Part shown: piece by piece, positions 48,935 through 54,900 of the stretch
Numbering within the stretch: the first letter of the stretch is position 1
Layout of the letters: each line of letters opens with the position of its first letter
Assembly: GCA_002269645.1 (NCBI GenBank)
Contig: NIVC01000735.1
Coordinates: forward strand, 1-64,000
DNA from: Macrostomum lignano
Lineage: Eukaryota
Direction: 5' to 3'
DNA: 64,000 bases
Notes under the pieces: generated by a model
What the model was told of the DNA's origin: nothing
The model's database searches: none
What the model saw: only the letters and a program-made list of their open reading frames with translations
Position numbers and translations under genes: made by a program

Positions 48935-51900
48935 TCACTGCAGGCGCGCATAGTCGGGCTTGGAGGAGCGGTCCTTCACAATCTGGCGCAGCAGCTTCTC
49001 GATGCTGCCGAGGCTGTCGGTGGTGGCCGCCTCCATGTTGCGCAGGCGGCGCTCCATGTCCACCAGTCGCTCCTCCTCCGTCCCGGCCTCCGCGGCGCCG
49101 AAGTCGTTGAAATCATTCAGCGTTTGGTAGGCAAAGCCGCCGCCACCAACTGCTCCGCGCTCCTCCTCGTCGTCGGACGGGCGATGGCGCGAGCGCGAGC
49201 GACGGCGCATGCGTCGCTCCAGCCTGCGGCGCTCCTTCTCGGCGCGTCGCTGGCGCTTCCGCTCCGCTTCCACCTCCTGATGCTCGTCCGCTGGCGCCGG
49301 CGCTGCACCGATTGGAGTCGGAGCCGGCGGCGGCGTCGGCGGCTCCGTCTGCAGCTTCGGCGTCTGTGGCCGGGCGTCGGGGTCGATTGGGGGCAGGCCG
49401 AGGTCCTTCTGCGAACGGAACTGAGTAGAGTTAGTGCTGGGCATGTAGACAGACAGACAGACAGACAGACAGACAGACAGACAGACAGACAGACAGACAG
49501 ACAGACAGACAGACAGACAGACAGACAGACAGACAGACAGACAGACAGACAGACAGACAGACAGACAGACAGACAGACAGACAGACAGACAGACAGACAG
49601 ACAGACAGACAGACAGACAGACAGACAGACAGACAGACAGACAGACAGACAGACAGACAGACAGACAGACAGACAGACAGACAGACAGACAGACAGACAG
49701 ACAGACAGACAGACAGACAGACAGACAGACAGACAGACAGACAGACAGACAGACAGACAGACAGACAGACAGACAGACAGACAGACAGACAGACAGACAG
49801 ACAGACAGACAGACAGACTGACAGACAGACAGACAGACAGACAGACAGACAGACAGACAGACAGACAGACAGACAGACAGACAGACAGACAGACAGACAG
49901 ACAGACAGACAGACGACAGACAGACAGACAGACAGACAGACAGACAGACAGACAGACAGACAGACAGACAGACAGACAGACTGACAGACAGACAGACAGA
50001 CAGACAGACAGGCAGGCAGGCAGGCAGGCAGGCAGGCAGGCAGGCAGGCAGGCAGGCAGGCAGGCAGGCAGGCAGGCAGGCAGGCAGGCAGGCAGGCAGG
50101 CAGGCAGGCAGGCAGGCAGGCAGGCAGGCAGGCAGGCAGGCAGGCAGGCAGGCAGGCAGGCAGGCAGGCAGGCAGGCAGGCAGGCAGGCAGGCAGGCAGG
50201 CAGGCAGGCAGGCAGGCAGGCAGGCAGGCAGGCAGGCAGGCAGGCAGGCAGGCAGGCAGGCAGGCAGGCAGGCAGGCAGGCAGGCAGGCAGGCAGGCAGG
50301 CAGGCAGGCAGGCAGGCAGGCAGGCAGGCAGGCAGGCAGGCAGGCAGGCAGGCAGGCAGGCAGGCAGGCAGGCAGGCAGGCAGGCAGGCAGGCAGGCAGG
50401 CAGGCAGGCAGGCAGGCAGGCAGGCAGGCAGGCAGGCAGGCAGGCAGGCAGGCAGGCAGGCAGGCAGGCAGGCAGGCAGGCAGGCAGGCAGGCAGGCAGG
50501 CAGGCAGGCAGGCAGGCAGGCAGGCAGGCAGGCAGGCAGACTGTGGCCGGGCTGTCTGTCTGACTTACCGACGGCTTTGGCTTTTCCAGCTGAACATCCT
50601 CATTCACCGACACGGTTGGTGACCTTTTGTTGGAGCCCGATGGCAGCTGCAGAGGTGGCTGAGACGCTTCCGGAGCAGCTGCGGCGGCCGCCGCGGGCGG
50701 AAGTCTTGGCTTGGTGCTCGTCGCCGAGCCCTCGCGGTCGCCGCCACCGCTGCCGCCGCCAGAGCCTTGGTGCCGCTCGTCGTCGAAGCGCTCATCGATG
50801 CGGTCGCACATCTTGTACAGCTCGTCCAGCCTGGGAGTTCAGAGTTCGCGCATCTTTGTTGTTCTTTTCGGAAGTTAAATCAATTATTCTGTTAGGCAAA
50901 CAATATTAAATAGAAAATTCTACTTGTGAGCAGTATACAACGAATATTATTAGAAAGTAGTAGATGCAAAGGAAAAACTTCAGTCAATTACGAGCGTAGT
51001 TAGGTTTAAGCAGCTGTGAGTGCAAACCAGTTTGGTGTTAATCGCTACTGCTCAAAGTAGTTTAAATTAGGCGAAATTCTGGCCGTTCGCTGCTGGCGCC
51101 ACTGGAGATTGGCGCGCCTTCCAGGCGTTCCTCACCCGCTGTAGATGCTCTGAATTCGCTGCTCAATGCGCCCCTTGGTCTCCAGCTCTTGCCGCGTGTT
51201 CACCAGCGACAGGCAGTGGGTGGTGAAGTTGCGCAGGTCTGCCTCCTCGCGCTGGCTGAGGCGCCCGGACTCGCCTGGTTGCCATGCGCGGGCACGGGTT
51301 GCTTTTCTGATTAGCACTGTGCACTGATGCGACCCCGGTGTACTGAGCACAGTCTGGTGTACATTGCTATGCATCATCTAGTGTACATTGCTATGCATCA
51401 TCTAGTGTACATTGCTTTGCACAGTCTAGTGTACATTGCTATGCACAGTCTAGTGTACATTGCTATGCATAGTCTAGTGTACATTGCTATGCACAGTCTA
51501 GTGTACATTGCATGCACAGTCTAGTGTACATTGCTATGCACAGTCTAGTGTACATTGCTTTGCACAGTCTAGTGTACATTGCTATGCACAGTCTAGTGTA
51601 CATTGCTTTGCACAGTCTAGTGTACATTGCTATGCACAGTCTAGTGTACATTGCTATGCACAGTCTAGTGTACATTGCTTTGCACAGTCTAGTGTACATT
51701 GCTATGCACAGCACAGTTCGCACTGTCAAAGTACAATTTTTAACCAATCAGAACATACAAATGACAACCAAAAAGGTTCATTTTGTCCCTCTATGTCCTT
51801 TAATACATTAAGTACCTGTTGGTTCAGGAGCTGGAGTTTATAAAGGGCTGAACAAAGCACTAATGACTACAGGTAGAAAAAAATAAAGACAAAAGTGCGT

Positions 51901-54900
51901 GCAAATAGAGGAAGATGAGAAAGACAACTCAGTACGACAGAGAGAGGAAGCCACAACACCCATGAGGCCGGCCGGATGAAGCCTGGCTGGCCTGAACAAA
52001 CCTGTTTGTCACGGTCTTCACCCGCATCTCAAGCGTCTGAGACTGCTTGGCCTTCAGCATGGCCATCAAGCGTCTGGCCATCTCGCTTTCGAAAACCATC
52101 AGCTCGTGCCTGAAGCTGGCTAGCAACTGCCCGCCTGGGTGAGGCCGGGAGGGCGAGGCGATCTAGCTGTCTAACATGAGGGCTCTGTCTAACACTTATC
52201 TCTGTGTCTAACATGTAGGCTTTGTCTAACACTTATCTCTGTGTCTAACATGTGGGCTCTGTCTAACACTTATCTCTGTGTCTAACATGTGGGCTCTGTC
52301 TAACACATCTCTGTGTCTAACATGTGGGCTTTGTCTAACACTTATCTCTGTGTCTAACATGCGGGCTCTGTCTAACACTTATGTCTGTGTCTAACATGCT
52401 GGCTCGGTCCAACACTTATCTCTGTGTCTAACATGAGGGCTCTGTCTAACACTTATCTCTGTGTCTAACATGCGGGCTCTGTCTAACACTTCTGGCTAAC
52501 ATTAAGCCAGAACTAAGTCCCACACCCTCAGTCCCACACCCTCAGTCCCACACCCTCAGTCCCACACCCTCAACGCCCCACCCTCAGCTCCGCACTCACC
52601 CTCTTTTCCCTTGCGGCAGCAGGGCAGGCGGCAGGCCAGAAATCTGATGAAGCGGAACACATCCTCCACGATGACGAACGGCACCGCCAGCACCGGCCGG
52701 GTGTGGTACTCGTGCACCAGGAAGTACATGTTGAACTTCCAGATCTCCACCGAGTTGTTCTGAATCTCCTTGAAGATGTTGCTGGAAAGGTGGATTTATA
52801 TCAAAAAAAATCAAAAAATGTTTTTGATAGATAAAGTTGAACATAAATATTTAACTCGGGACTTTGAGGATCATTTCGTTCACGGTATTAGCGGGATTTC
52901 GACATTGCACTGGGGATTTCGACAGTAGGGGAGATTTCAATTTCCGGAGCTTCCACCATTGCAAGGCATCCAGGCTGGCAGGCCAGGCTCGCTCACCTGA
53001 AGATGGCGATGAGCAGGTTGATGAGCAGCACGTTCACCACCATGAGGTAGACGGCCAGCAGCAGCAGCACCAGCGAGTGGTGAGTCGGGCAGAGCTTGCC
53101 GGAGCTGTCCACCGTGCTGCCGTCCTCGCAGCCCTCCGGCGGGGTCGCTGCGGGAGGGGGCGGCAGCATCGATTGCTGGGATTCGGGCGGATTGTATTGA
53201 GAATCAGGAATTCGGAATGGGGGGAATTTGGAACCCAGGGAATTTGGAATCGGGGAAATTTGGAACCCGGGAAATTTATAATCGTGGGAATTTGGAACCC
53301 TAAGAATTTGGAATCTGGGGAATTTGGAGTCGGGGGAATTTTGGAATCGGGGGAATTTGGAATCGGGAGAATTTGGAATCGGGGGAATTTGGAATCGGGG
53401 AAATTTGGAACCCGGGAAATTTATAATCGTGGGAATTTGGAACCCTAAGAATTTGGAATCGGGGGAATTAGGAGCCTGGGAATTTGGAATCAGGGGAATT
53501 TGGAATCAGGGGAATTTGGAATCAGGAGAATTTGGAATCGGGGAATTTGGAATCGGGGGAATTTGGAATCGGGGGAATTTGGAATCGGGGGAATTTTGAA
53601 TCGGGGGAATTTGGAATCGGGGGAATTTGGAATCGGGGGAATTCGGAATCTGAGGAATTTGGAGCCTGGGAATTTGGAATCGGGGAAATTTGGAATCGGG
53701 GGAATTTGGAATCGGGGGAATTTGGAAACAGGGGAATTTGGAATCGGGGGAGTTTGGAATCGGGGGAATTCGGAACCCGGGAAATTTATAATCGTGGGAA
53801 TTTGAAACCCTGAGAATTTGGAATCTGGGGAATTTGGAGCCTGGGAATTTGGAATCGGGGGAATTTGGAATCGGGGGAATTTGGAATCGGGGGAATTTGG
53901 AATCGGGGGAATTCGGAACCCGGGGAATTCGGAATCAGGGGAATTCGGAGCTCGGGGAATTTGGAACCCAGGGAATTCGGAATCGTGGGAATTTGGAATC
54001 TGGGGAATTCGGAATTGTGGGAGTTCGGAAGCAGGGGGAATTGAAAATTGAGGGAATTGAAAATCGGCGGAATTCGGACTCGTGAGAATTCGGAGTCGAC
54101 GTCAAATTTCGATGAGATTTGAGCGATTCCGGAGTGGATCTAACAGAAATAAAATCTCAAACAGAATAAAAAATCCTTCGCTCTCACCTTCGGCCACTTC
54201 CAGGTAGATCTCGCCGTAGATCTGCCAGTAGGGGTAGTACACAATGTCCACAAATATGCTGGTTGTGAAGTCGCGCGTCGGGTAGAGCAACGCTTGAGCA
54301 GCGACGCCGTAGGTCAACAGCGCGACGATGAGGATGCTCATGTAGAACAGCAGCTCCTTCACCATCTTCTGGATCATCACCAGCTTCGGACCCAGGTAGC
54401 TGTTGGCGTAGTACAGCCTGCGGGAGGGGCAGGGGGTCAGGGGGAGTCAACCTGCGGGAGTGGCAAGGGGTGGTCAGGGGGAGTCAGCCTGTGGGAGGGG
54501 GCAGGGGGTGGTCAGGGGAGTCAGCCTGTGGGAGGGGGCAGGGGGTGGTCATGGGGAGTCAGCCTGCGGGAGGGGGCAGGGGGTGGTCATGGGGAGTCAG
54601 CCTGCGGGAGGGGGCATGGGGTCATGGGGAGTCAGCCTGCGGGAGGGGGCAGGGGGTGGTCATGGGGAGTCAGCCTGCAGGAGGGGGCAGGGGGTTGTCA
54701 TGGGGAGTCAGCCTGCGGGGGGGGGCAGGGGGTGGTCATGGGGAGTCAGCCTGTGGGAGGGGGCAGGGGGTGGTCATGGGGAGTCAGCCTGTGGGAAGGG
54801 GCAGGGGTGTCAGGGGGAGTCAACCTGCGGGAGTGGCAAGGGGTGGTCAGGGGGAGTCAGCCTGCGAGAGGGGGCATGGGTGTCAGGGGGAGTCAACCTG

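Follow-up and report, generated by a model that had tools for sequence, protein, structure and literature searches.

Two adjacent rib-helix exons as a candidate mutually exclusive pair in a TRPM channel gene of the flatworm Macrostomum lignano

Can a TRPM channel gene be built to choose between two versions of its rib helix, the element that links the TRP helix to the cytoplasmic ring of these channels? The question is raised by a stretch of 64,000 nucleotides (nt) of the Macrostomum lignano contig NIVC01000735.1, hereafter the window, whose minus strand carries a TRPM gene. Between the exon that encodes the TRP box and the exon that encodes LDELYKM, this gene has two adjacent exons, here called A and B, of which the current gene models contain only B. 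We propose that A and B are mutually exclusive exons, one of them entering each mRNA, and that A is joined directly to the LDELYKM exon. On the comparative and splice-site evidence set out below, we give this reading a probability of about 0.65.

Searches of protein collections identified the organism as Macrostomum lignano and the gene as Mlig017231, represented in the window by its copy g3. An initial annotation of the window had assigned the gene to the TRPM family, and the assignment is borne out by an N-terminal TRPM homology region (LSDAT/SLOG), a six-helix ion-transport domain and the TRP box. A phmmer search of solved structures, with a rough concatenation of minus-strand open segments as the query, matched nvTRPM2, the TRPM2-like channel of Nematostella, with an E-value of 1.7e-118, and TRPM3 with one of ~1e-114. 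The window encodes residues 258-1399 of the GenBank protein P0066 (BOX15_Mlig017231g3) in 14 exons, with an exact match; the N-terminus of the channel lies beyond position 64000, and the normal stop is at 48937. Proteins of the P0066 cluster carry PF18139, PF00520 and PF25508, and the TRP-box exon contains the stretch EIWKFNMYF. Mlig017231 is present as three near-identical copies, g1-g3, as expected from the partly duplicated DV1 genome (PMC5730564). In addition, there is a paralogous gene, Mlig008865 (NIVC01000169.1, locus L001), with a protein identity of 62% to Mlig017231.

The constitutive TRP-box exon (52600-52781 on the minus strand, as are all exons below; 182 nt), placed by the exact mapping of P0066, encodes CRKGKE at its end and stops in phase 1, carrying one nucleotide over, at a donor of 11.1 bits (AAAGAGG/GTGAGT). 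Exon A (52002-52134, 133 nt), a canonical-type rib-helix exon absent from the GenBank models, is bounded by the acceptor CTCACCCAG (CACCCAG/GCGGGC) and the donor AAACAG/GTTTGT, and encodes 43 residues between a split-codon G and a split-codon R. Exon B (51136-51274, 139 nt), a divergent rib-helix exon and the one found in the annotated, transcript-derived models, is bounded by the acceptor GCAACCAG (CAACCAG/GCGAGT) and the donor CAGCGG/GTGAGG, and encodes 45 residues between two split-codon Gs. The constitutive LDELYKM exon (50569-50830, 262 nt) is entered in phase 2 at the acceptor CCCAG/GCTGGACGAG. The intron between the TRP-box exon and A (52135-52599, 465 nt) consists mostly of minisatellites, with a 37-nt unit repeated 8.8 times at 52168-52491 and a 14-nt unit repeated 5 times at 52516-52587, and the intron between A and B (51275-52001, 727 nt) holds a 24-nt minisatellite of 15 units at 51347-51711. 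A (GCAG)35 repeat is located downstream at 50400-50539. The equivalent introns of the paralog also bear minisatellites (~15540-16110 and 16577-16790), unrelated in sequence to those of the window.

Both exons are entered in phase 1 and left in phase 2. The initial annotation had reported this, together with the coordinates and lengths of the two exons (133 and 139 nt), and every one of these values, like the splice dinucleotides, proved correct when read on the minus strand. Splicing in silico of the TRP-box exon to either A or B, and on to the LDELYKM exon, gave a frame that stays open through to the stop at 48937. By contrast, inclusion of both A and full-length B creates a premature stop at 51163-51165, 289 nt upstream of the last exon junction, and skipping of both creates one at 50604-50606, 35 nt upstream of that junction. 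The rule proposed at the outset, that a single exon keeps the frame and that both or neither break it, thus holds. The two exons are adjacent, share their constitutive flanks, have an identical phase and are similar in length, which is the arrangement expected of a mutually exclusive pair, and the same arrangement is found in the paralog.

Is exon A a coding exon at all? In the GenBank models of the two paralogs, the exon used is always B or its counterpart B', never A. A tblastn search of the Mlig008865 locus revealed an A-type exon, VPILIGIKNELATFEMEMTRRLMAQLKAKESQTLDVRVTAVVNR, which is 59.5% identical to exon A (E = 5e-13) and sits between the TRP exon and the B' exon of the paralog, in the same A-then-B order. 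Reading of the DNA and mapping of the annotated protein place this exon, A', at 16192-16321 (130 nt) and B' at 16834-16969 (136 nt), both running from phase 1 to phase 2; B' is 41% identical to B (E = 8e-6). Over 2.3 kb, the only DNA that can be aligned between the paralogs comprises the TRP exon, exon A, a 29-nt core of B and the next exon. Exon A forms an island of DNA conservation of 97 nt with 72% identity (E = 4e-10), between introns that do not align at all with those of the paralog; no conserved intronic element was found around A and B.

The same comparison of the window gene with its paralog was used to gauge selection, by Nei-Gojobori counts of the nonsynonymous (pN) and synonymous (pS) proportions of differences with significance from a Fisher test. 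For A and A', pN is 0.26 and pS 0.71 (omega ~0.15; p = 2e-5), compared to 0.41 and 0.77 for B and B' (p = 6e-4), and 0.28 and 0.64 for the TRP exon. Constraint on the protein encoded by A is thus at least as strong as on that of the constitutive TRP-box exon, and stronger than on that of B. These counts indicate that both exons are under purifying selection and that both alternatives are maintained by it. At a closer range, gene copy g1 (L002) differs from the window by one synonymous change in A and by none in 305 nt of the intron between B and the LDELYKM exon; outside the minisatellites, the copies g1-g3 are too alike to reveal constraint.

Because the paralog keeps the pair, the conserved island stands between unalignable introns, and A fits the profile of the TRPM family better than B does (see below), the comparisons indicate that exon A is a real coding exon, though unannotated. 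The current GenBank models of Mlig017231 and Mlig008865 miss a conserved coding exon. It might be argued that A is a decaying duplicate that is no longer spliced and has stayed open by chance in GC-rich DNA, since it is absent from the GenBank models and open frames of ~45 codons are not rare at 55% GC. Such a relic is scarcely credible: its frame, phase and splice dinucleotides are intact in a paralog whose introns no longer align, its omega is low, and its conservation exceeds that of exon B and of the TRP-box exon.

What, then, do the two exons encode? Both isoforms align to the solved TRPM2 and TRPM7 chains through the segment that follows the TRP helix, which supports the view that A and B encode alternative versions of the rib helix and of the coiled-coil (pole) helix behind it, as far as its second or third turn. 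The alignment to TRPM3 ends just before exon A/B, and the correspondence to the rib helix rests on the alignments to TRPM2 and TRPM7. A family profile of the segment was built from 18 non-Macrostomum TRPMs, and each peptide was scored against 2000 shuffles. A scored 13.4 bits and A' 12.1 bits, values reached by none of the 2000 shuffles in either case; B scored 3.2 bits in the correct register, a value reached by 40 of 2000 (p ~0.02). In addition, B' matches the corresponding exon of Asterias with an E-value of 1.7e-4 (LRNFEKDC vs LRNFAAHC).

In Capitella, Haliotis, Physella, Mytilus, Lingula, Asterias and Trichoplax, the rib segment is likewise a discrete exon with the same boundaries and phase. 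It is 133 nt long in Haliotis, Physella, Mytilus, Asterias and Trichoplax, 130 nt in Capitella and 136 nt in Lingula. From the conserved Phe of the L..FE motif to the end of the exon, the distance is exactly 31 residues in all these species, and also in A, A', B and B'. The exon closest to A is that of Haliotis, with 14 identities in 35 residues. The last 11 residues of A or B carry hydrophobic residues at positions 0, 4 and 7, and this heptad continues unbroken into the next exon at L11, L14, C18, I21 and F25. A pattern at the ends of both exons that had been noted earlier, [LI]E.R[VI], turns out to be the start of the a/d heptad that is carried across this junction.

From an ungapped alignment of the last 35 residues of A and B, the initial annotation had concluded that the pair arose by an old exon duplication. 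The peptides and the alignment are correct as given, and the conclusion is plausible, as both exons match one ancient ~133-nt exon in register; the direct similarity that was to carry it is weak, with 6 identities in 45 residues and an end-anchored ungapped score that beats shuffles at p ~0.0008. Other evidence shows that the pair is no product of chance: the match of A to the paralogous locus (E = 5e-13), its score against the family profile, and the family-wide invariants kept by both exons. We therefore consider it plausible that a single ancient ~133-nt exon, which occurs from Trichoplax to sea star, gave rise to both A and B, with A canonical and mollusc-like and B divergent, mainly because of the shared invariants (length class, phase, 31-residue spacing and heptad) and not because of direct similarity. 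Within the gene, no other duplicated exons were found at E <= 0.01.

The same annotation had placed the segment just ahead of the tetramerisation coiled coil of TRPM channels. By homology this is reasonable, given the heptad and the alignment to TRPM2 and TRPM7; on the other side, the Pfam family TRPM_tetra (PF16519) has no match in the C-terminal 350 residues of either isoform at E-values up to 10. A second heptad-rich helix is present at the extreme C-terminus (48938-49080, minus strand, at the end of the last exon) and is conserved in the paralog, in Capitella, in Lingula and in a Logan transcript (...SLYNIE.LLR...). TRPM_tetra matches neither this helix nor the segment after A/B. The coiled coil that actually serves assembly in this TRPM subfamily may be the extreme C-terminal helix.

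The peptide of A and its conservation also bear on the idea that A is a poison exon, which never enters a productive mRNA and lowers channel expression when the A+B stop at 51165 sends transcripts into nonsense-mediated decay. The location of that stop 289 nt upstream of the last junction, a transcript-based annotation that holds B-only models alone and the weak donors of A would all suit this role. But the differences between the paralogs are those of a translated exon, with synonymous sites saturated (pS 0.71) and pN low (0.26). In addition, a poison exon would have no need of a peptide that matches the TRPM rib-helix profile and comes closest to Haliotis, nor of the conserved 31-residue spacing and heptad. 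We regard this role as very improbable.

If A is translated, could it be translated together with B? Exon A is seen only in two M. lignano entries, both confined to UniRef, in both of which it is fused to B without a break in the frame. P0067 (A0A1I8IVG5) splices to an AG that lies 19 nt inside B (51255-51256; a very weak acceptor, ctcAG/c at 51257-51256, with the shortened exon starting from 51255) and thereby joins A to a 120-nt remnant of B (...KTVTN/SQREEADL...). P0099 (A0A1I8F1M8) reads through the donor of A, inserts a mini-exon and then splices into B at an AG lying upstream, at 51306; its N-terminus is a translated minisatellite. A HMMER scan with the exon A peptide (45 residues) against 1.84 billion representatives returned P0099 as the sole match. 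Taken at face value, the two entries would make A a cassette that is always joined to a shortened or extended B, with isoforms that are either B-only or A plus the altered B and that, in the latter case, carry two consecutive rib-type helices. The presence in the paralog of an in-frame AG at the homologous Ser codon also speaks for such tandem inclusion.

The strength of the splice sites argues otherwise. Donor and acceptor weight matrices were derived from all 33 exactly mapped introns of the two paralogs, the real acceptors having a mean of 7.8 bits. The acceptor of A is strong (11.1 bits, above 25 of the 33 real sites) and its donor, GTTTGT, is weak (5.1 bits), a GTTTGC donor being in use elsewhere in the paralog; B has a weak acceptor (3.8 bits) and a donor of average strength (9.0 bits). 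Two of the 33 introns, 3211-3297 in L002 and 8085-8518 in L001, have GC donors (GAG/GCAAGT and AAG/GCAAGT, respectively), and GC-AG introns are therefore not rare in these genes. We enumerated, for both paralogs, every single-site change that would allow both exons in one open frame. In the window, in-frame co-inclusion needs either an acceptor of at most 0.8 bits or a donor of at most -3 bits; the best site in the paralog reaches -0.9 bits. P0067 relies on an acceptor of -1.5 bits, below 32 of the 33 real acceptors, whose equivalent in the paralog has -4.2 bits, below all 33; P0099 relies on the one at 51306, with 0.8 bits. The initial annotation had held that splice sites admitting both exons in frame would refute exclusivity. 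Such sites exist on paper, in the UniRef models, and only through acceptors at or below the bottom of the 33 real ones.

The proteins point in the same direction. A tandem A+B segment would break the heptad at the A-B joint by placing Q, E and R at core positions, and two rib segments in one protein occur in none of ~45 TRPM homologues. Moreover, A keeps the 31-residue spacing, its heptad finds a continuation in the LDELYKM exon only, and its terminal split Arg codon (AG/R, as in Haliotis, Physella and Capitella) would be pointless unless A were joined to that exon. The two UniRef entries disagree with each other, and the translated minisatellite of P0099 points to ab initio prediction. Because the frame problem is solved differently in each and their character is otherwise ab initio, P0067 and P0099 are probably gene-finder constructs from an older assembly, and the A+B fusion is probably artificial; they do show that gene finders recognise exon A as coding. 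The weak co-inclusion acceptors, the broken heptad, the lack of a two-rib homologue, and the 31-residue spacing with the split Arg codon are the reasons why we favour mutual exclusion over tandem inclusion, which we consider improbable.

Several observations nevertheless weigh against mutual exclusion. Neither an A-only product nor an A-to-LDELYKM junction was found in the protein collections or in the exhaustive HMMER scan, and the 90% cluster of the gene contains only B-only models and one A+B model. The donors of A are weak in both paralogs (5.1 and 2.1 bits), as is the acceptor of A' (0.1 bits), and an in-frame A+B product is possible on paper in both. A free local alignment of A and B is not significant (p = 0.43), which leaves their direct similarity marginal, and B' alone does not score significantly against the family profile. 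A search of 50800-52620 for RNA structure that could enforce exclusivity found only a 12-nt pair of 92% complementarity and a palindrome, with nothing beyond 12-13 nt; docking-site/selector complementarity of the Dscam type is therefore not seen there, short or imperfect pairings being still possible. The exon-junction rule for nonsense-mediated decay is assumed to apply in flatworms. A further negative result carries no weight: a word-index search with a 192-residue query of TRP exon, A and next exon found no match, and it missed the gene's own annotated protein too.

How might the choice between A and B be made? The GenBank models derive from a genome-guided transcriptome (StringTie/TACO plus de novo assembly; PMC5730564), and the B isoform is therefore supported by transcripts; the RNA-seq sets SRP082513 and SRR2682326 went into the Mlig_3_7 annotation. 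We infer that A is spliced directly to the LDELYKM exon and that the two exons exclude each other in vivo, so that inclusion of B would give the annotated isoform and inclusion of A an unannotated one with a canonical, mollusc-like rib helix. A transcript that includes both exons would meet the stop at 51165 and become a classic target of nonsense-mediated decay, and one that skips both would end at 50606 and encode a truncated protein. Productive mRNAs would then be the single-exon products only. Exclusivity could be achieved by splice-site competition together with the loss of out-of-frame products. Two weak sites, the GTTTGT donor of A and the acceptor of B, fit regulated competition between the two exons.

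Is the pair confined to Macrostomum? In Capitella teleta (KB312243.1, L003), an unannotated second rib exon (...SKSVQMLDIFEKEMKRQLLQDM...; MLDIFEKEMKRQLLQDMSRRGS) lies in the intron upstream of the annotated one at 6483-6612. If a GC donor is used, this copy covers 6241-6373 (133 nt) and shows the 31-residue spacing; if a GT donor is used, it reaches 6379 (139 nt). It has an open frame running from phase 1 to phase 2, and matches the annotated exon with E = 0.002 within the intron. In Lingula anatina (LFEI02000190.1, L008), an unannotated second rib exon (GKDQKLTERQRRALAGFEKECQKLHMQNQLDRECALTDNVIKTIKDR; ...LAGFEKECQKLHMQNQLDRECALTDNVIKTIKDR) is found at 15143-15281, downstream of the annotated one at 13478-13613. 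This copy is 139 nt long, runs from phase 1 to phase 2, has a strong pyrimidine tract, a GTATTT donor and the 31-residue spacing, and matches the annotated exon with E = 1.4e-4; all Lingula models in the protein collection use the upstream copy. In Macrostomum, Capitella and Lingula alike, the fourth residue after the conserved Phe is Met or Ser in the upstream copy and Cys in the downstream copy. In Haliotis, Physella, Mytilus, Asterias and Trichoplax, the search for a second rib exon was negative, the introns of Trichoplax being too short for one.

A similarity matrix of the copies showed that pairs at the same position in different phyla are not clearly closer than pairs at different positions. 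Because the matrix does not separate the two position classes, two histories are possible. The pair may be an ancient spiralian one that predates the split of flatworms, annelids and brachiopods, has been kept for >500 million years, was lost in molluscs and was overlooked by annotation, a tentative history that we rate as rather unlikely; independent, recurrent duplication of the rib exon is equally open. If the second copies of Capitella and Lingula are used, the switch would be either ancient or repeatedly evolved, which would make it a general point on TRPM regulation. An ancient pair, if true, would be a natural module for re-tuning TRPM gating.

What would the swap change in the channel? 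In vertebrate TRPM3, the rib helix forms an electrostatic latch with the melastatin homology regions 1 and 2 (MHR1/2) of the neighbouring subunit, which is broken on activation by heat or agonist. Recent structures single out this contact as the step common to both modes of activation, and mutations in it shift activation (PMC12819145). The segment encoded by A or B aligns to the rib-helix region of solved TRPMs; the TRPM3 latch was probed by point mutations, whereas here the variation would come from a natural choice of exon. Between the two predicted isoforms, the swap is confined to the rib helix and the first part of the pole helix. Replacing the whole rib helix would be expected to change the balance between the resting and activated states. 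Because the swap also takes in the first heptads of the pole helix, it might confer a different preference in subunit assembly. We infer that a different gating set-point is the most likely functional consequence of the A/B swap, possibly accompanied by a different assembly preference.

The residues conserved between the paralogs differ between the two exon types. A-type exons share FE.EM.RRLMA.LKAK.SQTL, which is Met-rich, slightly basic and free of Cys, and B-type exons share LRNF..HCL with a conserved His-Cys. Such isoform-specific conservation fits distinct, selected properties of the two versions. Two naturally selected versions of the rib helix, if true, would amount to a ready-made experiment on the control of gating and assembly. 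In M. lignano, a flatworm used as a transgenic model, TRPM channels already attract pharmacological interest, being related to the praziquantel target (PMC9910428).

Elsewhere in the window, a 562-codon open frame rich in Gln and His lies at 8665-10350 on the minus strand, downstream of the TRPM gene and on the same strand. The G+C content drops sharply to 0.31 at 20001-22000, compared to ~0.55 otherwise.

Does the A/B pair have counterparts among known systems? The initial annotation knew of no such switch in an invertebrate TRPM. For the site this stands, as the literature searched holds no description of alternative rib-helix exons in any TRPM; insect TRP papers that mention "mutually exclusive" exons deal with alternative first exons or with other TRP genes. 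For the kind of event, scallop isoforms show that an exclusive-type pair is not a new idea for invertebrate TRPMs. The scallop RefSeq isoforms X1 and X2 differ by a homologous, equal-length segment of 47 residues ahead of the first transmembrane segment (S1), at residues ~808-856 (PWQRV...TAPITKF), with 28 substitutions each between P0009 and P0078 of Argopecten and between P0012 and P0080 of Pecten, and a segment of 46 or 47 residues in P0008 and P0076 of Mizuhopecten. The swap looks like a mutually exclusive exon pair elsewhere in TRPM. It resembles the A/B pair as an exclusive-type exchange of a homologous segment in an invertebrate TRPM, and differs in that it precedes S1 instead of following the TRP helix. 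No second pre-S1 exon was found in the M. lignano gene, nor a second rib exon in the molluscs examined.

Mutually exclusive exons that arose by tandem duplication are well known in ion-channel genes, such as exons 8/8a of CaV1.2 and 5N/5A of NaV. Like these, A and B are adjacent exons of nearly equal length and identical phase, apparently derived from one ancestral exon and providing alternative versions of one structural element. Unlike these, the element is not a transmembrane segment but a cytoplasmic rib helix with the start of a coiled coil, and the evidence for the use of A is comparative. Exclusivity enforced by the reading frame is familiar from FGFR2 IIIb/IIIc, where the products of double inclusion or double skipping decay. 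As in FGFR2, the lengths of A and B are not multiples of three, and only single inclusion is in frame, any other combination leading to premature stops; no evidence emerged here for trans-acting regulators or intronic elements like those known from FGFR2. The added interest of the pair is that its unannotated exon is the more conserved one, that a paralog keeps the pair and two other phyla show an echo of it, and that the element swapped has a role in the gating of TRPM3. Altogether, A and B are a probable new mutually exclusive pair, which would bring a familiar type of switch to a site that is important for function and previously undescribed.

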